A stretch of 63,676 bases of DNA, the filler included, from Octopus bimaculoides (lineage: Eukaryota), in the NCBI RefSeq assembly GCF_001194135.2. It is 9 parts of 8 records of this genome, joined end to end, with 100 filler letters (N's around TTAATTAATTAA, not from the genome) between each part and the next. Parts side by side here need not be neighbours in the genome. Positions count along the whole stretch, not along the records: positions 1 to 14,307 come from NC_068986.1; 8 more parts are not named here. One strand, given 5' to 3'. Numbering within the stretch: position 1 is the stretch's first letter; every line of letters begins with the position of its first letter. A program made the translations under genes and the position numbers. Of this stretch, positions 1 through 14,307 are shown one piece after another. The notes beneath the pieces were generated by a model, which saw only the letters and a program-made list of their open reading frames with translations, did no database searches and was not told the origin of the DNA.

Positions 1-19
1 TACAAAACAACAAAAGGCG

Positions 20-130
20 AAGACGTGTGTGCAAACAACAAACAGATGTGAGAAAGTCTTTTACGTTTCGAGCCTACGCTCTTCGACAGAAAGGAACAAA
101 TAAATAAGCAGGGAGAGAAAATTTTTTAAA
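20..130 (-). mobile_element. Repeat family A: short Penelope-like 3'-end/pLTR-type remnant
   Basis: Motif ttacgtttcgagcctacgctcttc(g/c/a)acagaaagg recurs at ~60, ~2620, ~12730 and ~46450. Its reverse complement reads ctgtNgaagagcgtaggctcgaaacgt, a GAGC/GCTC hairpin followed by GAAAC. Penelope assignment is inference. Confidence 0.5.
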
Positions 131-204
131 AGGTTTAGTGGCTAGCGATCTATCATATATATAAATAAGCAGTTACACTTATTCAAATGCACACTCTCAC
201 ACTC

Positions 205-205
205 A

Positions 206-248
<43 letters not shown>

Positions 249-256
249 ACACACAC
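205..256. repeat. (CA)n microsatellite
   Basis: Direct reading. Confidence 0.95.
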
Positions 257-343
257 TCGTATCTACTTGTATTGCCCTCTTTTCTCTTTGAATTAGAAAA
301 CGGCGACTTGTTTCATTATTTTCAATTGCACTTTCAGATCAAT

Positions 344-416
344 ATGACACGACTGCTTCCTATTTGCTTGTTGTCTTTGATTGCATTAGCAACTGTTATG
401 GGTGCAGCTGAGATCG
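344..416 (+). CDS. First coding exon (signal peptide) of a secreted cysteine-rich protein: MTRLLPICLLSLIALATVMGAAEI
   Basis: Acceptor ctttcag at 331-337, ATG at 344, hydrophobic signal-peptide-like stretch with a basic N-terminal residue, consensus donor G|GTAAGT at 417 (phase 1). Joins in frame to the exon at 4430. Confidence 0.8.
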
Positions 417-568
417 GTAAGTTTCCAATGAGATATGAAAATACTGAATAATTAAACTTTTGAAAATTGCCTGAGCACCAATTCTTTCATCGATTTAATC
501 AAATACACTTTTTCTGTTTTTAATTGTATTGCACTTATCGATATTTGATTTCCATCATTCTGACTTGA

Positions 569-770
569 TATACGGGGTAGTTACTAAAGGTTCCTGGACA
601 GGTTATGTTTACTAAAGAAAGAATTTATTCACCTAAGTTTTAACATCAATCCTTTTCGAAAGTGTCACCTTATGCAGCAATAGACCGGTCCCAGCATTTC
701 TGTCACTTTTGGAATCTGGCCTGGAAATCGTTTTCCGTGTGAGAGTGGATGCCCTTCTGCAATTCGCTCA
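569..770 (-). mobile_element. Mariner transposase C-terminal remnant with terminal repeat end
   Basis: Minus strand reads ELQKGIHSHTENDFQARFQK*QKCWDRSIAA*GDTFE, a typical mariner C-terminus. It is followed by a tacggggtagttactaaaggttcctgg TIR-like end. Confidence 0.6.
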
Positions 771-772
771 TC

Positions 773-1590
773 AGAAGCTGAACAGGAGACAGTAACAGTT
801 TATTACGTCAACATCGAAGTAAAGGGTGTAATGCTAACAATTAATCAATATAGATGCCAACTCAGCTGGTGGCCCTCATGGATTCCCAGCAATCCTTCTC
901 AAGTCATGCAAACGAGTCTTTGCAAAACCATTGCAGCTACTTTTTTCAGAGCTACCTCTGAAATGGTAAGCTTCCGGATAAACAAAAGGATTGGGATAAT
1001 ATACCCTATCCATAAAGTAAGAAGCAGATCAGGTGCTAAAAACTATAGGCCGGTCTCTCTGATCTCACACATCACCAAAATCATGGAACGAATAGTATGA
1101 AGGAAATTAATTGCATTCCTTGAAGAGTCAACCATGGTATAATTTGTCACAAGCTGCGTAGTTTTGGCTTAGCTGCAAAACTTGGAGAATGGACACTTGA
1201 CTTTCTAAAGGATAGACGTTAGTTAGTAGTTCTCAATGTGGCCACCTCTAAAGAAACTCAAATAATGGTATTCTGCATGGCATTGTCTTGGGGACGTGGC
1301 TTTTCATAGGGGCCCTCTCTGACATGCCCTTAGCTACTCAAATAGCCACTCTTGCTAGCTATGCATACGATACAAAAAACTCTCAAAAGATACAGGACAC
1401 TGCATTTCTTGCACATCTACAACGTGAGATCGATGCAATATACAGGTGGGCCGAGGAAAATAACATGCAGATTAATACTGGAAAATTCCAAGTCATGTGC
1501 TACAAACACAGAAAACCTTCTTTAGGTACGCCAAGGAGACTGCATTGCAGGGTAGGCCTTGCTTCTTGTAAAACGAGGGAAACCCAATGA
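773..1590 (+). mobile_element. CR1/L2-group LINE reverse transcriptase fragment (decayed)
   Basis: IYPIHK...KNYRPVSLISHITKIMERIV; LASYAYDTK (YADDTK-like); LQREIDAIYRWAEENNMQINTGKFQVM. Contains stops and frameshifts. Confidence 0.85.
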
Positions 1591-1765
1591 GAAGAAGTGA
1601 AACACTGAATGAACAGTTTAAAAGTGTCTTCATCCCACCACTACGAAACATGCAAATTATCAAACCTATAGAGATCGTTACCACTACAGAAGCTGAACAG
1701 GAGGCAGTAACAATTTATTACATCAGCATCGAAGAAAAGGATGTAATACTGACAATATATGATGT
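1587..1765 (+). mobile_element. Second CR1-like fragment (pre-RT linker), partly duplicating 773-850
   Basis: LNEQFKSVF...ISIEEKDVI; agaagctgaacaggag...gtaat(g/a)ct(a/g)acaat is shared with 774-841. Confidence 0.65.
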
Positions 1766-2025
1766 ATAAATATATAGAGACAGATACAGATAGAGAGATA
1801 TAGAGAGGTAGAGATAGATAAAGAGAGATGGATAGAGAGATACGGACACATCGCTGACACTAAAAAACCGGAAGTATATATTTTTAAAAACTTTCAAAGG
1901 CGTGAATCTAATCTGAAAACCAATATTTTTTTCAATGATAAAATGGATGTAAGGGAGACAATTAATTTCTGAAAGTTACTTCGCAAAGAGTTACCTCCTT
2001 TCTCTATGTAACCCAGGAACTACTG

Positions 2026-2425
2026 TTATCTGTCCCCGCGGGCTTGTTACTCATTATGTAAAAACATTTAAGAGTCTACAATCATGCCTGCAACATAAGT
2101 AATGTATGTTCCCAGTTTGGAAAAAAAATCAGTTCAAAAATACGCCGTTATAATATTATNNNNNNNNNNNNNNNNNNNNNNNNNNNNNNNNNNNNNNNNN
2201 NNNNNNNNNNNNNNNNNNNNNNNNNNNNNNNNNNNNNNNNNNNNNNNNNNNNNNNNNNNAAATTGCGTTCTCTATGCGTGTGTCTGTATGTAAAAGATTA
2301 TAACGGCGTATTTTTCAACTGATTTTTTTTCCAGACTGGGAACATACATTACTTATGTTGCAGGCATGATTGTAGACTCTTAAATGTTTTTACATAATGA
2401 GTAACAAGCCCGCGGGGACAGATAA
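2026..2425. repeat. Long inverted repeat (129-bp arms 2026-2154 / 2297-2425) around an N gap; foldback/MITE-like
   Basis: Arms are reverse complements with only two mismatches seen. Confidence 0.85.
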
Positions 2426-2490
2426 TTGAGCACTCAACATAAGTTCAGTTATATATTCTTTTAGAATATTTCTTTTAGAATATTACTTAT

Positions 2491-2524
<34 letters not shown>

Positions 2525-2529
2525 GGGAG

Positions 2530-2720
2530 AATTCACAAAAAAGAACAAAAGACGAAGGTAGGTGATGTAGACAACAAACAGATGTATCAGTATAACGCTC
2601 AGGAAGTGAAAAAGTCTTTAACGTTTCGAGCCTACGCTCTTCCACAGAAAGGAACACAGTAAGAAACAAGGAGAGAAACAAGGAGAGACAAAAAGAATGT
2701 CCTGTAACAAGCGATCTATA
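2530..2720 (-). mobile_element. Repeat family A copy
   Basis: Shares acaacaaacagatg...aaagtctttaacgtttcgagcctacgctcttccacagaaaggaac with 20-130. Confidence 0.6.
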
Positions 2721-2789
2721 TATGCATACATATATACATACACACATATATATACACACTCACACACGCACACACACACACATATACAC

Positions 2790-2831
<42 letters not shown>

Positions 2832-3569
2832 AAATGAATGTGTAATAAGGTTTTTGTATACAAAATAATTACCAAAATACATATGCGCGTGTATGAAAAT
2901 GTGTGCATGTGTAAACGTGTGCATTTACAAACGTGTACATGTATAAACGTGTGCATGTGTAAAATGTGTGCATGTGTAAACGATTGTAATTAATTAGTTT
3001 ACAGGGTGATTTGATCTAGGTTGGCGGGTTCAATATAAATATTTACCCGTAGATACTAAGACATAAAATTTGCTGATCGAAAAACTGCGCGTCTATTACA
3101 AAAGGTCACAGAGGAAAACCATTCACATTTTTACAGAAAAGAGTTATGGGGAGGTCCCATACATTAAATAATTCCATCCTATCAGTTCCGAAAATATTTG
3201 TTGTATTATGTAACAAAAAAGGGGCTTTTACGGTTTTTTAACGAAATGTAACGTCACTCACCAATTCGCTCTAAAAATATAACTTTCTTCCTGAAACACT
3301 ACAGGCAGTTTTCGAAGTTTTTTTTTTTTTCGTGTATCTGTTAATTATCGAGATATCACCGTCCGTATCCAATTGTAACTTTACGTTGTACGATTAATTT
3401 TAACATACACAAATTTCCTTTTAGACTAGTTCGTATTTTTTTGTCATCGACAACCTCTCTACGAGATTTTTTCTGTGGAACCACATTTTAGGTTCTATCT
3501 TTCAGTGCGACATTTTATGGCCTATTTTACCAAAACGTCAGTCGGTAAGTTCAGAGTTCAGAGTTCAGA

Positions 3570-3695
3570 TTCTGCCGAGGTTGACTTTGCATTTCATACT
3601 TTCGAGGTTGATAAATCAAGAACTAATGAAGTACTGGGGTCCATGTAATCGACTATTTCCCTCCCCCAAAAGTGCTGCTTTTTTGGGAACATTTG
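3570..3695 (+). mobile_element. SINE-like fragment (family with ctgccgaggtcgactttgc core) ending in an (ATT)n tail
   Basis: Same core at ~6195 (+) and ~34050 (-). Confidence 0.65.
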
Positions 3696-3698
3696 AAG

Positions 3699-3699
<1 letters not shown>

Positions 3700-3776
<77 letters not shown>

Positions 3777-3778
3777 CT
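3700..3778. repeat. (ATT)n/(AGT)n compound microsatellite
   Basis: Direct reading; a further (ATT)n lies at 3945-4022. Confidence 0.95.
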
Positions 3779-3804
3779 AGTTCTATTTTTTAGTGTTCAT
3801 GTAT

Positions 3805-3905
3805 GTAAGGTAGCAAATGCACTTATCATCAGCCACACAGGGAGATGCTCAACTGGTTAAGGTCAAGCAACTGACAAGCAAATCTGTGGTATTAAGCAGA
3901 ATATT
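3805..3905 (-). mobile_element. Dispersed repeat fragment (family E), reverse complement of part of 63290-63365
   Basis: ctggttaaggtcaagcaactgacaagcaaatctgtggtatt matches the reverse complement of 63288-63330. Confidence 0.7.
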
Positions 3906-3960
3906 TACTCTAGCCCATCGTTTATACCAAGACAAAACAATGTACTTATTATTATTATTA

Positions 3961-4013
<53 letters not shown>

Positions 4014-4429
4014 ATTATTATTACTAGTTCTATTTCTTAGTGTTCATGTATGTAAGCTAGCAAATAACAGCTACACCAAAACCTGAATACCGGTGTTTCC
4101 TGTACTTTACCAGTTCGCAATAAAACCTTTTAGTTCGCTTCAACTGCGCACGTAGGTAGGAGAAACCTTTATAGAAGAAACTATATGTTCATTAAATTGG
4201 TATCAATATACTCCACTTATTTGTTTTATCAAAACAGGACTGGGAAAAGAAGTAAAAGATCCGACTGAATTTCATATACGGATTGGAATGAAGCAACGGA
4301 TGTTATCTAAGTTGGATATTATTGAAACCAACTTTACATTCTCCTAGTTGATAATAAATCTACGTTAGGAAATATCCAATATATAATATACTGTTTAGTA
4401 GATATATTAATATGTGTATTTTTATTTAG

Positions 4430-4567
4430 AGTGTAATGGATGTTTAATGGAAGGTAAATGCTACCGTTTCGGAGAAAGTTGGAAGGAAAAGACGGAAATT
4501 ATGTGTAACGTGAAAAGATGCATTCGTTTAAATAAAAATCAATGGAAAGTAACCGTAAAGAAAGTGT
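4430..4567 (+). CDS. Second coding exon of the secreted Cys-rich protein (module 1): ECNGCLMEGKCYRFGESWKEKTEIMCNVKRCIRLNKNQWKVTVKKV
   Basis: Acceptor tttttatttag ends at 4429, donor T|GTAAGT at 4568. 138 nt, symmetric phase 1-1, open frame, lies inside the ORF-track entry 4414..4695. Confidence 0.85.
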
Positions 4568-4890
4568 GTAAGTTGCCAAAGAATATCTTTGTATCCTTCC
4601 TTCACTATACATTTTCAAACAGCCAATATCTCAACGAGTTGAGATATTGCCTCATACAATATTCTCGTGATGTGATCAGCTTGTTCTGCTTTTGATCAAG
4701 TGACAGATGACGTTGGTTCCACCGGTCAGGAACCTCCAGCTTATTCCTACAACCCAAACACAAAACAATTTCTCAAATGTCATCATTTCTAAAAATAAAT
4801 TTGGCATCAATTCTAAAAATAGCCAAACACATACTGCTGCTGTCCAAAGGAATTGGTATAAAAGACAGAAAACCAGCCAGTCTATTACAG

Positions 4891-5044
4891 TATGTTACAG
4901 TCTGTCATACCGGCCATGATGAAATACCACAAGGTATAGAAAATACGTATTCGCCTTTATATATTTAATCCTTTATATTGAACACTCAATATTTCATCTA
5001 TTCAATAAGACATATTCCATATATTCAATAAGACATTCAATACT
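4891..5044 (+). mobile_element. Dispersed repeat with degenerate minimal hammerhead-like motif (intronic copy)
   Basis: Near-identical to 26845-26996. Contains ggc-cATGATGA-aatacc-acaa-ggtata-GAAA-atacgtat-TC-gcc. Confidence 0.6.
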
Positions 5045-5639
5045 NNNNNNNNNNNNNNNNNNNNNNNNNNNNNNNNNNNNNNNNNNNNNNNNNNNNNNNN
5101 NNNNNNNNNNNNNNNNNNNNNNNNNNNNNNNNNNNNNNNNNNNNNNNNNNNNNNNNNNNNNNNNNNNNNNNNNNNNNNNNNNNNNNNNNNNNNNNNNNNN
5201 NNNNNNNNNNNNNNNNNNNNNNNNNNNNNNNNNNNNNNNNNNNNNNNNNNNNNNNNNNNNNNNNNNNNNNNNNNNNNNNNNNNNNNNNNNNNNNNNNNNN
5301 NNNNNNNNNNNNNNNNNNNNNNNNNNNNNNNTATATATACAGTATTCTTCAAATTTTCTTAGAGTGATCTAAATATTTTTTCCTATATTAACGAAGTCAA
5401 ATATCCAACCTTGATTTTAATGAAACGTTAATTATCAGAATAATTATCGTAATAACCTCTGAAATTAATATCGACTGCACCAAAAATATTCCAACTATGT
5501 TATAACTACACACATGACAATAATCTTACATTCAATCTTGTTTCATATACGCAACTTATAAATGAAAGCTATGCACATGTGTCCATACATACTAATACAA
5601 ATACCACACACGACAAATCGACTGTATTCGGCTCAGTCC

Positions 5640-5890
5640 TCAGTTAAATTATTGGCTGTACATTGTGTTCTTGAGCAATTCACTTTATTTCACATTGCGC
5701 CATCCCATTCAGCAGGAAAAATTAGTCGTACTTATAATTCAAAGAGTCCACTCTATCTCGTTCTGAAGCTCACTCAGAACTACGATAACGGCACGCGTGC
5801 CTCTGGTGTTCTCAGCGACTTGCACCTCAGTTTTACGAGTAGGCGTTTCTGTTGAGCAGATCAAGAGGGATACTTGATGTCGTAACCGGC
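5640..5890 (+). mobile_element. Decayed tRNA-derived SINE
   Basis: gtgttcttgagcaa..actttatttcac central block shared with the copies at 25280 and 48620; tail similar to 27330-27450. Confidence 0.6.
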
Positions 5891-6189
5891 TTCATGCGAA
5901 TTTTACACTTATAACCGAAGAGAATGCTTCAAATAGCTTTCATGCGACTGGGGTATATAAATTGAAATGCCTTCTATCTCTCCTTAAAATCGAGGCACAG
6001 AACATACACACATTTACCTTAATCTATTCCGATTTTAGGAATATAAACTCAAGATATAAGGTTCCTAATAAATTACGTTTAATAAATATATAATCAAGAA
6101 TGATTTTGAATGAAACGGTGAACTGGGAAAATAGTTATAATGCCGGGCAAAATGTTTATCGGATTTCTTTCTGGTTTTCGGATTTGACT

Positions 6190-6290
6190 TCAAGTTCTGC
6201 CGAGGTCGACTTTGCATTTAAAGTCTTCCAGGATCCGATATAATCGACTTATGCGATCCCCTAAAATTGCTGGCCTTTTGCCAGGTTTTA
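6190..6290 (+). mobile_element. SINE-like fragment (ctgccgaggtcgactttgc family)
   Basis: Similarity to 3570-3695. Confidence 0.55.
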
Positions 6291-6370
6291 GCAATAATAG
6301 GTACGATTAAGTGAAGTACAGTTACTTAATAAAGTAAGCTAGATATTGCTTGTTTTCTTATCAACAACAG

Positions 6371-6518
6371 TTTGTCGGCGGAATGATGACAAATGTGTTG
6401 GGAACGGTAGAACGTGGCCACTCTTAAAAGACGGTGAATGCTGGATTCGCAGGTGCAAAATTTGGGAAGATAATCGCGTTGAAATCACATCAAAATTAGG
6501 GGACATTTGTTACGTAAA
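6371..6518 (+). CDS. Third coding exon of the secreted Cys-rich protein (module 2): FCRRNDDKCVGNGRTWPLLKDGECWIRRCKIWEDNRVEITSKLGDICYVK
   Basis: Acceptor tgttttcttatcaacaacag ends at 6370 (phase 1, in frame with exon 4430-4567). Same Cys/Gly/Trp spacing as module 1. Donor AA|GTAAGT at 6519, or read-through stop TAA at 6520-6522. Confidence 0.8.
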
Positions 6519-6779
6519 GTAAGTATATATTTTAAGCTACCTAATTTAATTTATTCTCCTCCACGTTGCTGTTGAGTTTCCCGTGTAACACACGTCCTCG
6601 TCTATTCTACCTCTAACTCCAGTTAGCTTTCATTCAGATATAAAAATACAATCGTAAATATTTCCAGTTACATATTTCAACTGACAAACCGTGGAAATCC
6701 TTGTTCTGTTTTTTCTACTCTAAAAAAAGTGTGTCTTTTTTTGTCGGGGCAATCTATGACAAACAGTCATGCTCGCATA

Positions 6780-9060
6780 TGCTTAAAAGATAAACTTCAA
6801 GAAAATCTTTATAGATTTTTACAGTTCTAGTGATGGATTGGATCTGTAATCTTCGAATTAGCTTTCTCTTTTCTAGTTTTGAGAAGCCTAATTTCTCAAG
6901 ATTGGTAATTAAGTAGTGCATTAGATATCACAGGGCCCCAATAATTACAGGTATAAACCTGAACCTGTAATCTGGATAGAGTAGCTGCAGATTTCTCAAT
7001 AGTTCACCATAGATGTTCCCTTTTTCACTGATCTTCAGCTTTATGTTAACATCCGCTGGACAGCTAATTGCCACAACTGTTTCTCTTCTCTATCTCAAAT
7101 CATTATATCAGGTCTTTTGTGCTTACAATTTATTGAGGTCTTCACTGGGACATTCCACCAGTATTCCTTTTCATTATGAGCGGCTATAGATTCTACCTTA
7201 CTGTGAGTTCTTATTTCTTAGACCTTGGAGTTATCCTTCCCACGGGACTTTCATTATAGTGTCTCAGCTACAACATCGTGTCTCATCGGTAGATAATACC
7301 GTGATGACATTTTCGGACAACGGCTTAAGGTGTGGGTGATATCTTCAGTGTTAACCCCACAAAGTCTAAATCGGTCGTCATATTTCACTGATTTTCCTGC
7401 ATTTTGTCCATTTTGTGCATCGGGTATTTGATATTTCCTGTTCCTGGGTTGCAAACGCATACCCTTCAAAGTGGGAGGTATTAAGCTGGTTGTCGGTCCA
7501 TAATAGACTGCTTCGATAATCAATGTTACTATCATCTCTGAGCTTTCTACTAACATATCCATGCACGATCTTCTGCTCTTATATGCTCATCCTTTCATGT
7601 GATGATATGTTGCAGGAGAGTCGTGCGACTTCTTTGGGCATGTATTTAAGGTTATCAGACAAGGAATGCTGCACAAGGACCTGCTTCCCAAGTCTTATGA
7701 TGTTATCAGCCCCATGTAAGCAATCTTGGACAAGGGACGCACTTCGAAACTAGACGTTTAAACGATGTTGCCAAAGGGATATAATACGACATTTAAAGAC
7801 AGTTTGAATCGATGTTAAGTCAATGCCGCCTTGTTTTTGTTTTATGTAGTGGCTGTCTACGTCCCTGTTGATGTGGAAATTATGTGTGCTTGTTAGTATT
7901 TTTCGCGTTTTCACATTAATGGCTCCCACCTCATCAAGTTTCCAGTCAAACAGCCCAAATATTGGTATGAATACTGGCACTGCAAGTACATTGAGGGCCA
8001 CTGTTTTATTGAACTCAGCGAATTCCAACGTCCAACTTTACTTTATTCGGCTGTAATATACATTAGTGACACGTGTTTTGTTACAGGTGTCATTGTAAGT
8101 TATGCTTCCATTCATTTCTCGATACCTGCAACATTCCTCATCAGACATATGGGAAACAGTCAAGTCATTGAAGGAGATGTTGCCAGTATGAGGGACAGAG
8201 TGAAATACTTTTTGTAGTTTAGCCACATTGAAACTAGCTTCTTTCCATGTTCCTGCACCTCTGACATCACATGTTTGCTGATTAACAATTGCTCAGCACA
8301 TCCCCAGATTCCCTTCTTCGTAGTTGCTTGTTCTGCTGTGATAATGTTATTGGTTTCCCAATGGTCCTGGAGGAAGAGGCTTTAACATGTTGTATATATT
8401 TTATACATCAAGTTGTGGCATGCAATTGGCCGGTAGTTTTTATCCATGTGAATGATTCTGCATCTGGGGATCAGTTTTGTCTCTGTCAGAGCAAGCCACT
8501 ATGGTACGCTACTGTTCCCACTGTGAGCTTGCTGGTACAGATTGATAAGATATGGTCGGTAGAAGTTTAGCTTCTTGTACCAATATCCAAAATTCAAGTT
8601 TCTTCCATGTGCTTTTCCATCCTGAAGTTTCTGGATCATGGTGTCAAGTGTATATAGACATATACCATGTCTAACTTAATAGCACCAACTTGATATAATT
8701 CTGTTAAGTTCTCTGGTATCGTAACATTCAATTAGGGAGACGATATTGACTGAGACTTATCTAGGCATAGATAGCTTATCTCTCATCCCTTCAAGAAATT
8801 TGTTCAGATATCATTGGAAGTAACGGGATCGTTTTCTTCTTTGAATTGCTTTGCAATCATGTCAAATACTGCAGAGACATTTGAGGAAAAGTAATTTGGT
8901 TGCCTGTATGAGGGTTGGCTGAAACCTTCAAGGGCCGACCAAGATACTCTCATGGAATGTGGCCAAATGAGTTTTATTTTCTAACATATTCCGGTCAACA
9001 CGTTTCTTCCATTGGTGTTCCAACGCTTGGTTCCCATTGGTAAAGAAACATTCATCCTAT
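6780..9060 (-). mobile_element. R4/Dong-like non-LTR retrotransposon 3' half (RT, CCHC finger, restriction-like endonuclease), decayed
   Basis: KTRKILT...KQGG; CRLCGVNTEDITHTLSRCPKM...RHDVVA; WWNVPVKT..KHKRPDI...ISCPADVNI...IPVIIGAL. Multiple stops and frameshifts. Confidence 0.85.
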
Positions 9061-9918
9061 TAGTCAAAAGAAGTCAACAGCAGCATATATTGTTGCAATG
9101 ATACGAAACTAAATGTACTTAATTTCACATTGTTAAATAAGCTGTCGCAGATAAAAGGTGGTCAGCTCGGTGGCAGACACAGACAGTAATTGAATAGACA
9201 ACCAACCACATATAGTAGCAACAGCAAAACACGATGGATATATCGACTCCAAACTAATCGAATTATCAGCACATTATTATCATTAGATATTTCTCAACGC
9301 TACCGATGCACCAGTATCGTCACTGAACGCGACGTGTCACAAAACAAAAGCACAAGAAGAAAATTAATGCACAGTGACAAACTGCAAGAATACACATACT
9401 AACGGACTACACATGTTTAACAGGAGGCATTGCTACAAATTTACATACAAGACTGTTGTTATCAGATCGGCTACATAGTGCGTGTTGTGTCACAGAAAAT
9501 AACCAAATCAACCATGTTGTATTACACAAGAAAATCAATAATATTATGGCTACATCTCACATTCCCGAAATGCAGTGTCACTTAGACAATGCAGCCGATG
9601 CCCTCCAAATATTCAAACAAAATATCATGTACTAATGTGAAGATGTCCTGTACCCATATATGCTTGTATGTATACATATAGACCCCGAAGTATACAACCC
9701 GAAGTATATTTTAATTCGTCAATGAGATTAACCTGCTCGATAAATCTATGCAGCTGGAAATCGAAGGTAGCGCATTTATAACCTTATTGTTTAATGGCAT
9801 TTTATTGCAGTAAGATTTACAATTTTATAATTAACGACACTAGCCAAATTTATTTAGTAATAATTGTTCTTGCTATATATATATAAATAAATGTTCTATA
9901 TTTTTTCTGCTTTTATAG

Positions 9919-9931
9919 AAAATTATACTGA
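9919..9931 (+). CDS. Candidate terminal exon of the secreted Cys-rich gene (adds K-L-Y-stop)
   Basis: Strong acceptor ttttttctgcttttatag ends at 9918, phase-2 compatible (AA+A AAA TTA TAC TGA), AATAAA at 10073-10078. Other acceptors (~9149, ~13181) cannot be excluded. Confidence 0.35.
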
Positions 9932-10255
9932 TCGATCTAAACCTGAAACAAAAATCGAAAGCAAAACGAAAATCAGTTTGCTATAAACTGATAAAGACGG
10001 AGAATTTTACCGGACTAAGATATTAACATTATCTCATATAATCTCCACTTAAACAAGTGTATCAATTAACGTAATAAACTTTCAGAACACTTCTATTTCT
10101 TTCTGTTTTGTTTTCTCTTTTTGATATTTATGACAGTTAGAAACCATTAGAAAGAAATTATGCTTAAAAAGGGCCATAACAGATGTATTTCTATGTATTA
10201 ATCTATGTATTAATCTATGTATTAATCTATGTATTAATCTATGTATGTATGTATG

Positions 10256-10320
<65 letters not shown>

Positions 10321-10424
10321 GTTTGTCTCACTATCTGTCTGTATATCTATCTATCTATCTACATATCTATTTATATATCTATATACATAAAATTTCAAGA
10401 AAACAGAAAATGGAGATAACATTC

Positions 10425-10703
10425 ATGAACAACAATGGATTTGGCTCAATTATTATTTATTAATAATTTACAAAAAAAACTGCATCCCATCTAACATCTG
10501 TTTCTGCTGCCGATGTTCTTTGGAATTACCATTATGATGCTAACAGAATATTTATCATAGTTGGCAATAAAACGGTTTGAATCATGGAGCTTCATCAGAG
10601 GTAATTCCAAAGAACATTGGCAGCAGAAACAGCTGTTAGATGAGATGCAGTATTTTGTAAATGTTTAATAAATAATAATTGATGCAAATCAATTGTTGTT
10701 CAT
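10425..10703. repeat. Imperfect inverted repeat (~105-bp arms 10425-10530 / 10600-10703) with CTGATGA core in the loop (minus strand)
   Basis: Arms are reverse complements at an estimated ~90% identity. Minus strand loop reads ctCTGATGAagctccatgattcaaaccgtttta. Confidence 0.8.
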
Positions 10704-10719
10704 CAACGGTATTCTTCTA

Positions 10720-11072
10720 TTCCTTTACTCTTTTACTTGTTTCAGTCATTTGAGAGCGGCACTGCTGGAGCACCACCTTTAGTCGAGGAAATCGACCCCA
10801 AGAGTTATTCTATCGGTCTATTTTGCCGAACCGCTAAGTTACGGGGCGCAAATACACCAGCATCGGTTATCAAGCGATGTTGGGGGGAGAAAAAGAGACA
10901 CACAAACACACACACACACACGCATATATGCATATATACGACGGGCTTCCTTCAGTTTCCGTCTACCACATCTACTCACAAGGTCTTGGTCGGCCCGAAG
11001 CTATAGTAGAAGACACTTGCCCAAAGTGCCACGCAGTAGGACTGAACCTGGAACCATGTTGTTGGTAAGCAA
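10720..11072 (-). mobile_element. tRNA-derived SINE (family B; head ggcgcaggagtggctgtgtggtaag...)
   Basis: Near-full copy matching 16055-16455 and 22030-22390; internal CA/TA microsatellite. Confidence 0.9.
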
Positions 11073-12710
11073 AATTCCATAAGAGCAGTGAGTACAAGTA
11101 TGAATACATCACAATTATAACGGAGAGGGTTGCAAAATCTCTTGCATGTCTAGAAATAGCTGTCAAAACCATCATAAGGCCACTATGACCACTCCAGTTC
11201 TATCTCTTCAAAATAAAGTTGTCGGCGGACGACATGATATATAATTCAAAATTTGAAAATAAAAAGTTAATTCTGTATTGGAATTTCGAAGTTAGGAACC
11301 TGGCGTTTAAACTCTTCCCTTCACGAGAACTTTCCTGTCAATACAAATTAACACAAACAAAATATATATTTGGGGTTTACATGTGTCCCGAACGGCAAGA
11401 ATAATGTATGAACCACATTCAAATTCTAAATTCCAACGTCACGTCATGCACAGCGTTTATAAGAAAAGTGTGGTTTATTAGCAATTAGAACTTAAAGGCA
11501 AAATTGATAGACGTCACATGCGTAATAGATGGTACTGACTATACGGCTGGACTTTGTGATACATCACAAAGTTATAAATAGCAACATGCTGGGTGGATGG
11601 TGGAGAATAGATTTTTTTATAATCAATACAGAAGATCGCCTGTATAAAGGAAATGTTTCGAGTACCACGCTCAGCCTTCTAATTGTATGCTAAAGGTGTT
11701 CAACCCAATATTGTATAGCTTTAGGATGCGCCTCATTATCATTCTTTCGCAAGTTTGAATACTTGTTATGGGGTTCAAAAAATATATATGTATATGTTGG
11801 GTTTTAAAAATATATATGGATATGTTGCGTTAGGACACAGAATGTTGCATTATTTACTATGACAGGACTTCTCATATGGACATGTGTTGTAAAAAAAGCA
11901 GTGTTTATAATACTGGCGGGCGAAAATCATCCTCTGCGGCCGCCGGAAGTGCTAATTAACGTAGTTTTGAACGGCAAGGGTTTCGCTAGACACAGTAATC
12001 CTTTGCACCGACAGCGATATACAAACTTTCGTTATCTATTTATAGACTGTCTCAAAAAGCCAGTTTGAAGTAGTTATTGGGATAAAGAGTCAATATNNNN
12101 NNNNNNNNNNNNNNNNNNNNNNNNNNNNNNNNNNNNNNNNNNNNNNNNNNNNNNNNNNNNNNNNNNNNNNNNNNNNNNNNNNNNNNNNNNNNNNNNNNNN
12201 NNNNNNNNNNNNNNNNNNNNNNNNNNNNNNNNNNNNNNNNNNNNNNNNNNNNNNNNNNNNNNNNNNNNNNNNNNNNNNNNNNNNNNNNNNNNNNNNNNNN
12301 NNNNNNNNNNNNNNNNNNNNNNNNNNNNNNNNNNNNNNNNNNNNNNNNNNNNNNNNNNNNNNNNNNNNNNNNNNNNNNNNNNNNNNNNNNNNNNNNNNNN
12401 NNNNNNNNNNNNNNNNNNNNNNNNNNNNNNNNNNNNNNNNNNNNNNNNNNNNNNNNNNNNNNNNNNNNNNNNNNNNNNNNNNNNNNNNNNNNNNNNNNNN
12501 NNNNNNNNNNNNNNNNNNNNNNNNNNNNNNNNNNNNNNNNNNNNNNNNNNNNNNNNNNNNNNNNNNNNNNNNNNNNNNNNNNNNNNNNNNNNNNNNNNNN
12601 NNNNNNNNNNNNNNNNNNNNNNNNNNNNNNNNNNNNNNNNNNNNNNNNNNNNNNNNNNNNNNNNNNNNNNNNNNNNNNNNNNNNNNNNNNNNNNNNNNNN
12701 NNNNNNNNNN

Positions 12711-12830
12711 CGGGAATACGGAAAGTCTTTGACGTTTCGAGCTACGCTCTTCAACAGAAAGAATACGGAGACAAGGAGAAAAACACGGAGAAAAAAAATT
12801 GAATAGTGTTCAGTCAACGGTCAATCATAA
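12711..12830 (-). mobile_element. Repeat family A copy
   Basis: aaagtctttgacgtttcgagctacgctcttcaacagaaag. Confidence 0.55.
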
Positions 12831-12876
12831 TAATGGCCGATCATAACAATGACTGACCGGAAGTTATATATATATA

Positions 12877-12944
<68 letters not shown>

Positions 12945-13869
12945 TTCAAAGTTGAAGGTGTGACTTTGTAGTCTGTCAAATTCCTATATGTTGCTTGGAC
13001 TGAACTCATCAGTGTTCACGGTTCGGTTACTGCTACTGCTATTTAGGTATCAGAAAATGATGTATGACATGCATGGAATCATTGACCTTTGTGAGAACAT
13101 AAATACCTCTAGATTCCCGTACACCAGTGCAATCTGACAAATCAGTTCTGTATTCTTTCATTGTACTTTTCTATACTTCACAGCAGAGGGCATGTATTTA
13201 TAGAGCTAATTTGTTGTCCTTTTGAAATTGTAATATATTGTTCAAATTATTATTTACCGTTTTTCATATTTACTTAAAACGCAATACGAAAAATCAAACC
13301 ACATCTACGAACATCAAAAAGATATTTATTATATAATAGTGGGTGGAGAAAAAAGAAAATGCTTAAATCAAACATTTTTCTTTATTCGTTTTGTATTTGT
13401 ATCATGTGATCGATCGATTATCGATGATACTTGACCTCGATATTACAACAGTACTAAAATAAAGAGAAGCTTTGAAATAATCAATAGTTCTCTGATTTTC
13501 TACTATAAATTATTGATCGATATGATCTAAAATAATATTTTTTAAAGTTTGAAAGTTGCTCAGGATTCACTAATTAATATCATATTAAATATTGACTCAC
13601 ATCTCAGAGAAGAAATAATAAAGCTAAACTAAATGTTACTCATGTTTAGGCGTTATAATAAAGATTTTCAACACAAAGAGGTCACAAATTTGTAGGGTGG
13701 GGTAGAGTCAATAAAATCAAAACCTATATTTGACTGGTTTAACTAGGGTGCACGAAAAAAAAGGTCAACAACACCAACGGGATTCAGAAACGTACAAAGA
13801 CGTCGGTAAATACTGTAAATTGCGTGATTCAATATAATAAAAACTTTTCTCTGTATATTTTTTCTTTAT

Positions 13870-14307
13870 TTTTTTTCTCCCTCTTATTTCTTGTTCTCTT
13901 TTCTTAATTCTTCTTTCCTATTTTTTTTCTCTCTTTTATGCGAAATGTGTTCATTTTCTTTTGAATTTTTTGAACTTTTTTCTGAAACATGGCAAATGAA
14001 CAGAGCGCTGCCCTGGAGTGGGAATTATGCCCACCCAGGCAGCGGCTGGATGAAATGGAAGAGAAAGCAGTGGTCATGTGGACCTATTCTAGGTCACGCG
14101 ATGCCATTACCCTCCTCGACAAAGAAATAATAAAGGGAGAGCTGGCAAGTGTGTCGCCAGCAAAACATTTCTATATTTGCAGGGGAGTCAAGTATGCAAT
14201 TGTGTGGTTGCTATTTGACTCCTCTGAAGAGGCTTGTAAAGCTGCAAGCCAGCCCCTTGTAGGGGCGAAGATTTTGTTCCTTCCCACATATTGTGGGAAG
14301 AACGTCA
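13870..14307 (+). mobile_element. Tx1/L1-like LINE 5' UTR and ORF1 start (truncated at spacer)
   Basis: T-rich leader, then MANEQSAALEWELCPP...VWLLFDSSEEA...PTYCGK; homologous to 26046-26623. Tx1 assignment is inferred from the Tx1-type ORF2 elsewhere in the window. Confidence 0.55.

Follow-up and report, generated by a model that had tools for sequence, protein, structure and literature searches.

The gene LOC106872088 of Octopus bimaculoides lies in the first part (positions 1-14,307) of the window, the 63,676-nucleotide stretch of DNA analyzed here, which joins nine parts of eight records of assembly GCF_001194135.2. It is a four-exon gene encoding a 123-amino acid precursor. The explanation that best accounts for the results jointly, and which is considered probable, is that the gene belongs to an Octopus-restricted cluster and codes for a secreted, non-enzymatic binding protein resembling a pair of fibronectin type I (FnI) modules and evolving under diversifying selection. 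The core of the protein is predicted with good confidence to form two consecutive all-β modules, each a hairpin packed on a three-stranded antiparallel sheet, that together resemble an FnI pair. The gene is known already, with RefSeq and UniProt entries that are both labeled uncharacterized, and is not an undiscovered one. A search of the literature by locus names, accessions, and peptide strings gave no paper that names the loci or peptides of the family.

Gene Structure of LOC106872088

The 123-amino acid product of the four joined exons is identical to RefSeq XP_052825015.1 ("uncharacterized protein LOC106872088") in an exact protein look-up, and the translation of exon 1 matches the start of that entry. 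An earlier sequence-only reading of the locus had described a three-exon gene at 344-6522 with a product of 120 amino acids. Its exons (344-416, 4430-4567, and 6371-6522) join in one frame over 363 nucleotides and reproduce the quoted 120-amino acid sequence exactly, and the sequence, the splice sites, and the homologous junctions of the paralogues all agree with them. These three exons stand, but there is a fourth, the gene extends to at least position 9931, and the annotated product has 123 amino acids. All donors are GTAAGT, all acceptors consist of a pyrimidine tract followed by AG, and intron phases 1, 1, and 2 set the reading frame. Exon 2 is the sole exon visible as a plain open reading frame (ORF), at 4414-4695, just as had been noted from the ORF track. 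Every exon has homologues with identical splice junctions in five other Octopus loci, which excludes a chance assembly of exons. The coding sequence spans 9588 nucleotides, equal to the span of the gene at L006, the chromosomal locus of LOC106872088. The elements of the gene, all on the plus strand, are as follows.

196-343, plus strand: upstream region, with a (CA)n microsatellite at 196-257 followed by a conserved block whose last bases, ...tttcag, adjoin the ATG
344-416, plus strand: exon 1, coding; start codon, signal peptide MTRLLPICLLSLIALATVMGAAEI, and first base of the next codon (phase 1); donor TCG/GTAAGT
417-4429, plus strand: intron 1, 4013 nucleotides; assembly gap at 2160-2259, reverse-transcriptase-like remnants, and simple repeats
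4430-4567, plus strand: exon 2, 138 nucleotides, phase 1-1; ECNGC and module 1 (five Cys; motif G-KC-Y-RF-G-ES-W)
4568-6370, plus strand: intron 2, 1803 nucleotides; contains the assembly gap at 5045-5331
6371-6518, plus strand: exon 3, 148 nucleotides, phase 1 in and phase 2 out; Cys-72 of module 1 and all of module 2 (Cys-79, Cys-94, Cys-99, and Cys-117)
6519-6524, plus strand: exon 3 donor GTAAGT, whose bases 2-4 are an in-frame stop TAA (6520-6522); context AA/GTAAGT at 6518/6519
6519-9918, plus strand: intron 3, 3400 nucleotides, gap-free; minus-strand ORFs of interspersed-repeat or retroelement-like character
9919-9931, plus strand: exon 4, coding part (A AAA TTA TAC TGA); completes Lys-121 and adds K-L-Y and the stop
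9932-10100, plus strand: probable 3'-untranslated region (UTR) of exon 4, with AATAAA at 10073-10078; the exon 4 regions of the L001, L003, and L005 paralogues are homologous to it

Conservation extends outside the coding exons, with the last ~460 nucleotides of intron 1 being shared with the introns of the paralogues. Upstream of the ATG, the (CA)n microsatellite is common to four of five paralogous loci and the ...tttcag sequence is invariant in the five that were aligned, with pairwise identities of 45-69% among the paralogues over the upstream 110 nucleotides. This conserved block may be a 5'-UTR or promoter, or it may mark the acceptor of a first exon that is non-coding and not annotated.

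The first part of the window is identical over 14307/14307 positions, gaps included, to the plus strand of CM046606.1 (GCA_001194135.2) at ~106,931,909-106,946,215. Two assembly gaps fall within the gene, at 2160-2259 in intron 1 and 5045-5331 in intron 2, and across both of them the continuity of the DNA rests on the assembly and the RefSeq model. Both gaps are intronic, no block of residues is missing from the protein when it is aligned with its paralogues, and the intron lengths lie within the paralogue range; the gaps hide no coding sequence. A third assembly gap of 614 N (12097-12710) is located downstream of the gene, and in the chromosome record two larger gaps (L006 8525-9657 and 23965-24986) enclose the piece 1-14307 itself.

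Predicted Secreted Precursor

The N terminus carries an arginine at position 3 followed by a run of hydrophobic residues (4-19) with a mean Kyte-Doolittle value of 2.56 compared with -0.70 for the rest of the protein, and small residues (V-M-G or G-A-A) precede the mature part. On inspection of the sequence and its hydropathy, this has the appearance of a typical cleavable signal peptide of ~20-22 amino acids, which would make the product a classical secreted protein; the signal-peptide-like N terminus had been recognized in the sequence-only reading and is conserved in all paralogues. The precursor is laid out as the signal peptide (~20-22 amino acids), a core of ~92 amino acids with 10 invariant Cys, and a 6-amino acid tail, YVKKLY, that includes a Lys-Lys pair. 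The composition given earlier agrees with the count: there are 11 Cys in total, of which 10 lie past the signal peptide, 5 Trp, and 23 Lys/Arg in the whole protein (22 past the signal peptide) versus 14 Asp/Glu. The core has a net charge of +9 and an isoelectric point (pI) of 9.2, so that the description cationic holds for LOC106872088, but it does not extend to the family, in which the core net charge varies from -6 (pI 4.9) to +14.

From the spacing of the Cys residues in the repeats and the 1-3/2-4 rule of FnI modules, five disulfides would be expected, most simply Cys-35-Cys-55 and Cys-50-Cys-72 in the first repeat, Cys-79-Cys-99 and Cys-94-Cys-117 in the second, and a local Cys-26-Cys-29 pair. 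Skipping of exon 2 would keep the frame in LOC106872088, and one RefSeq isoform of a neighboring gene (P0009/P0014) does skip it; the exon-2-skipped form has an odd number of Cys (five) in its mature part, which fits the proposed disulfide map.

Predicted Fold

AlphaFold2 was applied with a family alignment of eight sequences to the paralogue P0002 and to P0001, the LOC106872088 product minus its first 30 residues. Both models are all-β, with a predicted local distance difference test (pLDDT) score of 89.6 and a predicted template modeling (pTM) score of 0.73 for P0002, and 85.2 and 0.67, respectively, for P0001. Each half of the models is formed by a short hairpin and then three long strands. 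When the two models are compared with the PDB using Foldseek, the top ~15 matches of both are exclusively FnI module pairs (PDB codes 3ejh, 2cku, 3cal, 2rky, and 1fbr), representing 8-9FnI, 2-3FnI, and 4-5FnI of vertebrate fibronectin, with E values from 5e-4 to 0.1, probabilities of 0.97-1.0, and template modeling (TM) scores of 0.40-0.56; the lower matches are noise. Moderate TM values are expected because two modules can hinge. The FnI pairs are the only significant Foldseek matches for either of these two independent models.

The likeness to the fibronectin pairs (2-3FnI, 4-5FnI, and 8-9FnI) would extend to the overall plan of two consecutive, disulfide-braced modules of ~45 amino acids with a hairpin and a three-stranded sheet, and the features that define the FN1 fold, a module of ~40-45 amino acids with two- and three-stranded antiparallel sheets, are present in the prediction. 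Module 1 of LOC106872088 also carries the motif G-x2-Y-x2-G-E-x-W (G-KC-Y-RF-G-ES-W), in register with the G-x2-Y-x2-G-D-x-W of human modules, and exon 2 has the phase 1-1. The motif varies across the paralogues, where Tyr is commonly replaced by His or Arg, Gly is frequently absent, and only Trp is invariant. The existence of two tandem modules, proposed in the sequence-only reading, is borne out by their shared Cys spacing and by the two-module AlphaFold models, and the shared spacing is better support for an internal duplication than the profile comparison of the modules given below. Of the three loose resemblances suggested at that stage, the one to FnI modules is upheld by prediction, the one to the N-terminal part of VWC domains survives as a sub-threshold Pfam match, and the one to β-microseminoprotein finds no counterpart in the Foldseek fold matches of either model. 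The suggestion that the protein belongs to no named family also holds in that no Pfam family is matched above threshold; the sole match is VWC (PF00093) at an E value of 0.045, with 14.5 bits compared with a cut-off of 27.6. Searches of PDB sequences with family profiles return chance matches only (deoxycytidylate deaminase, E 0.97; FBXW8, E 0.24).

Several differences from FnI modules are apparent. The hallmark C-x-C of FnI strand D is missing and is replaced by C-x4-C, both repeats having the form C-x14-C-x4-C-x16/17-C. There are extra Cys residues in the octopus family, in the CxGC sequence at the N terminus and immediately ahead of the aromatic position. The octopus protein is also a stand-alone mollusc protein of ~100 amino acids and is not part of a large matrix protein. 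On these models the family is best described as FnI-like by fold, without FN1 membership by sequence.

Family and Gene Cluster

A profile search of 1.84 billion representative proteins gives 12 matches at E≤0.001, of which 10 belong to the family (one being P0001 itself) and two are long repetitive proteins that are evidently spurious; seven relatives, all from Octopus, have E<1e-10. The family comprises ~10 paralogues and is found in O. bimaculoides and O. sinensis only. An array of paralogues, which the sequence-only reading had suggested looking for, is present as a cluster on one chromosome, and the proposal of a lineage-specific cephalopod family is retained as regards its lineage restriction, which is shown for the genus Octopus only. 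The LOC106872088 product is 33-59% identical to the other members, and the true family matches are all named uncharacterized except for one paralogue (A0A0L8IDT5). In O. bimaculoides the cluster occupies 106.93-107.27 Mb, a distance of ~340 kb, with loci at the following positions.

106.93 Mb, plus strand: L006 (LOC106872088)
107.00 Mb, plus strand: L003
107.10 Mb, minus strand: L001
107.26 Mb, minus strand: L002

The loci L004 and L005 are from O. sinensis. All members share the same intron positions, junction sequences, and exon plan, with introns in phases 1, 1, (2), a signal peptide of the pattern MT[RQ]L.P.CLL, and the invariant Cys spacing C-x2-C-x5-C-x14-C-x4-C-x16-C-x6-C-x14-C-x4-C-x17-C. 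In several members the tail is longer and carries dibasic sites immediately past the last Cys.

Further coding-like sequence occurs in and around the family loci. L003 carries, at 1916-2143 and 4858-5188 and ~8 kb upstream of LOC128248175, a divergent module-2-like exon (DCRLINAVCSKIDTSYVTISDDKCWNYTCKYQGDSKIITTVEYAGLC) that is not annotated, together with an exon-4-like region of its own; the module Trp is replaced by Tyr, and this is either a further family member or a pseudogene. In O. sinensis, a complete exon 2 (DCDGCSVEGECHSYGELW...) is found at 9920-10066 of L005, just upstream of the start of XP_036359417.1 (P0008), a protein that starts within module 1 and appears to be an N-terminally truncated model. 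The N-terminal extension of isoforms X1/X2 of LOC106872057 and of A0A0L8IDN6 (…YHQLFISVGGVTFGIKTRLFRVRHSLKFF…) matches sequence at 4269-4349, 7938-8054, and 25052-25138 of L001, three copies that surround another paralogue. In all probability it is a repeat that happens to be in frame and not true coding sequence.

Rate and Mode of Evolution

The ratio of nonsynonymous to synonymous substitution rates (dN/dS), calculated by the method of Nei and Gojobori for the 91 codons of the core, those of the invariant Cys and Trp among them, ranges from 0.49 to 1.62 in pairwise comparisons between genes and is 0.73 for one orthologue pair of O. bimaculoides and O. sinensis. At the DNA level, exon 2 is 57-70% identical to that of four relatives, with values of 67-81% for the adjacent 300 nucleotides of upstream intron; for LOC106872088 compared with L001 the figures are 57% for exon 2 and 80% for the intron. 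Exon 1 of LOC106872088 is 63-75% identical to that of the paralogues. Read from these sequences, a tandem array of genes whose signal peptide and scaffold are kept while the surface changes fast has the pattern of a secreted effector family.

A number of points weigh against the proposal of a diversifying FnI-like family. The fold comes from predictions on a shallow eight-sequence alignment of a single family, and the disulfides and exposed edge strands are ones that we infer. Neither the whole protein nor any of 10 module-1 and 11 module-2 sequences matches fn1 (PF00039) at E≤10, and hhalign comparison of the octopus modules with nine human FnI modules, each verified as identical to PDB chains, gives probabilities of 1.0% and 1.5%, so that no significant sequence relationship links the two and the likeness could be convergent. 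The short hhalign alignments are nevertheless in the structurally expected register, with the second Cys of CxGC placed on FnI Cys1 and G..[YH]..G..W on G..Y..GD.W. Modules 1 and 2 are only weakly similar to each other by profile (hhalign E 0.005, probability 7%). A dN/dS near 1 on 91 codons is noisy, the same value is given by relaxed constraint, and in this small sample individual members may have experienced relaxed constraint.

Alternative 3' End

The stop codon contained in the exon 3 donor creates two possible 3' ends. If the end of exon 3 is left unspliced the protein terminates ...YVK (120 amino acids), whereas splicing from 6518 to 9919 gives ...YVKKLY (123 amino acids). In a search for the YVKKLY ending there is a single candidate exon, with the acceptor ...gcttttatAG at 9917-9918 and AATAAA 142 nucleotides further. 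The older UniProt model A0A0L8IEY6 (P0001) is 100% identical across exons 2-3 and ends ...YVKKLY, and the 120-amino acid form is absent from a collection of 15 billion proteins. The stop within the donor recurs in the paralogues (TCA/GTAAGT in L001, CAG/GTGAGT in L002, and AAA/GTGAGT in L005), and their RefSeq models use both outcomes, with P0003 stopping at the donor and P0005 and P0008 splicing on to the tail exon. The 120-amino acid form is therefore what the unspliced transcript would give at a 3' end with two conserved outcomes, and splicing would decide whether the C-terminal tail is added.

Proposed Function and Alternative Explanations

The LOC106872088 protein would be secreted and would act by binding an extracellular partner; there are no catalytic features in the protein, and a binding role is proposed in place of an enzymatic one. 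FnI pairs bind collagen peptides and bacterial adhesins in such a way that the ligand adds a strand to the edge of the sheet, and the matched PDB entries are complexes of this type. The best guess for the octopus protein is a similar edge-strand mode, in which an extended segment of the partner would be added as an extra strand at the exposed edge strand of each sheet, with the strongly basic surface of the LOC106872088 product possibly aiding the interaction. The partner itself probably evolves fast, and the rapid divergence of the family would point to host defense, saliva or venom, or chemical or reproductive signaling. A generic fast-evolving secreted binder is ranked first, with venom-like and antimicrobial functions as more specific and less likely versions of it. 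A fuller account, which is tentative and would be possible rather than probable, combines an octopus FnI-like module that is very divergent or of independent origin, its use as a stand-alone pair in a diversifying cluster, β-strand addition to changing extracellular targets (for example pathogens, prey, or conspecific cues), and the stop-in-donor switch.

As a toxin-like product of the salivary gland (venom) or of another exocrine tissue, the protein would use the FnI-like scaffold to carry hypervariable binding surfaces directed against prey or predators. A tandem array of genes with conserved signal and divergent mature parts is a pattern familiar from venom gene families, and the octopus cluster has these properties together with a mature-coding exon that is less conserved than the adjoining intron, dN/dS values near or above 1, and, in several paralogues, dibasic sites right past the last Cys that suggest proteolytic trimming. 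However, neither Pfam nor the PDB sequence searches give a match to any known toxin family, the published literature as searched above holds no mention of the family, and this role is considered unlikely. Slightly less likely again is a cationic host-defense peptide, in which a basic, Trp-bearing, disulfide-braced β-structure would disturb microbial membranes. The LOC106872088 core, at +9 and pI 9.2 with five Trp, is suited to such a role, and a tandem array, fast evolution, and a conserved signal peptide are seen in many immune effector families. The charge is not conserved, however, given the range of -6 (pI 4.9) to +14 among paralogue cores, a mature protein of ~100 amino acids with two structured modules exceeds the typical size of membrane-active peptides, and there is no significant match of defensin type, the best being Defensin_beta at E 0.54. 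It is doubtful, and more so than either of these roles, that the protein is a divergent VWC or single-VWC (SVWC; chordin-like cysteine-rich) protein acting as the Vago-type SVWC proteins of arthropods or as a cysteine-rich domain that binds bone morphogenetic proteins. VWC is the sole Pfam signal, which improves from E 0.045 for the whole protein to 0.029 for module 1 of LOC106872088 and covers the C..G..Y..GesW...C sequence; VWC domains likewise have ten Cys and are secreted. The N-terminal subdomain of VWC is FnI-like, and the domain is, unlike FN1, widespread in invertebrates, which makes a distant VWC origin the most plausible ancestry. The match nonetheless lies far under the cut-off and is made by 1 of 10 module-1 and 0 of 11 module-2 sequences, the CxxCxC and CCxxC motifs are absent from all family members, no VWC structure is among the top Foldseek matches, and the second half of the octopus protein is predicted as a full sheet module and not as VWC subdomain 2. 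Arthropod SVWC proteins are set apart, by description, by an eight-Cys framework, whereas the octopus family has ten Cys with another spacing.

Two further explanations concern the identity and integrity of the gene. It is very unlikely that LOC106872088 is not a working gene, either as a decaying duplicate or as a model stitched over assembly gaps. The dN/dS near 1 and the two intronic gaps would fit, but the reading frame is intact through four exons with every donor GTAAGT, all 10 Cys and the key Trp are kept, the UniProt model, which is older and covers exons 2-4, agrees with the newer four-exon RefSeq model in the shared exons and 3' end, and in comparison with the paralogues the gene lacks no coding sequence. 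The least probable of the alternatives, to the point of being hardly credible, is a midkine/pleiotrophin-type heparin-binding growth factor. It is suggested by the UniRef name of the paralogue A0A0L8IDT5 (P0002), "Pleiotrophin/Midkine N-terminal domain-containing protein," and by a general likeness, as both are small, basic, secreted proteins with 10 Cys and two domains rich in β-sheet. No member of the family matches the PTN_MK entries of Pfam (PF05196/PF01091) at E≤10, and hhalign against pleiotrophin and midkine sequences verified against PDB 2n6f and 2luu gives a probability of 0.13% with one aligned column. Such proteins, whose two domains have a TSR-like fold, are absent from the top 50 Foldseek matches of both models, although their chains exist in the PDB, the Cys spacing differs, and the family is genus-restricted and fast-evolving, unlike a growth factor conserved across animals. 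The Pleiotrophin/Midkine name of A0A0L8IDT5 is unsupported by the Pfam, profile-profile, and fold comparisons, all of which are without a match, and both the sequence and the predicted fold refute the identity.

Other Elements in the Window

The remaining features of the first part of the window are mainly repeats. Within intron 1, a run of ORFs on the plus strand resembles the reverse transcriptase of retrotransposons that lack long terminal repeats, and one of them (1288-1590) has a weak Pfam match to RVT_1 (E 0.097), the other ORFs of the first part having no Pfam match; the run is probably a decayed fragment of a long interspersed nuclear element. The minus-strand ORFs of intron 3 and the segment 6770-7010 partly coincide with sequence that is 78-80% identical to the flank of a paralogue, 7569-8191 and 6770-7010 corresponding to 2605-3197 and 4434-4691 of L002; this DNA is an interspersed repeat or a shared intergenic remnant. 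The elements are listed here.

831-1769, plus strand: ORF run in intron 1 resembling reverse transcriptase (for example ...YRPVSLISHITKIMERIV)
7254-8226, minus strand, and also 6770-7010: ORFs in intron 3 with no Pfam match
10725-11072: interspersed repeat, with copies in both orientations that are 80-87% identical, in L002 and twice in L004 of O. sinensis
3581-4014, 10183-10400, and 12821-13009: simple repeats giving long spurious ORFs, with homopolymers of Ile, Ser, Leu, or Val (trinucleotide repeats), a (TCTA)n-type repeat just past the probable 3'-UTR, and a poly-Asn run
13989-14307, plus strand: ORF of more than 100 amino acids (MANEQSAALEWELCPP...) that reaches the edge of the piece, with no Pfam match

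Relationship to Known Systems and Significance

In evolutionary mode, and in that only, the octopus family is similar to venom and immune superfamilies such as those of the conotoxins, with a tandem array, an invariant Cys frame between whose members the residues change rapidly, a dN/dS near or above 1, and a signal-peptide exon that is more conserved than the mature-coding exons. There is no relationship to them in sequence or fold, and most peptides of this sort are far smaller than the mature octopus protein. The matrix literature treats FN1 domains as specific to chordates or mostly restricted to them (PMC3308698). If the models are correct, the occurrence of such a pair on its own in a mollusc would be unusual and would reflect either a very divergent relative, possibly derived through the FnI-like part of VWC, or convergence.

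The presence of an FnI-like pair in a genus-restricted molluscan family would mean either two origins of the fold or an age greater than has been assumed, perhaps by descent from VWC-like ancestors; if true, the FnI-type finger module would be no chordate invention. A protein this short should lend itself readily to expression and structure determination, and for now its practical value is modest. The family offers a clean and small example of a lineage-specific secreted cluster in octopus, having a conserved signal peptide, a fixed Cys frame, and a fast-changing surface, and clusters of this kind are regarded as a basis of the novelties of cephalopods in saliva, skin, suckers, and immunity.

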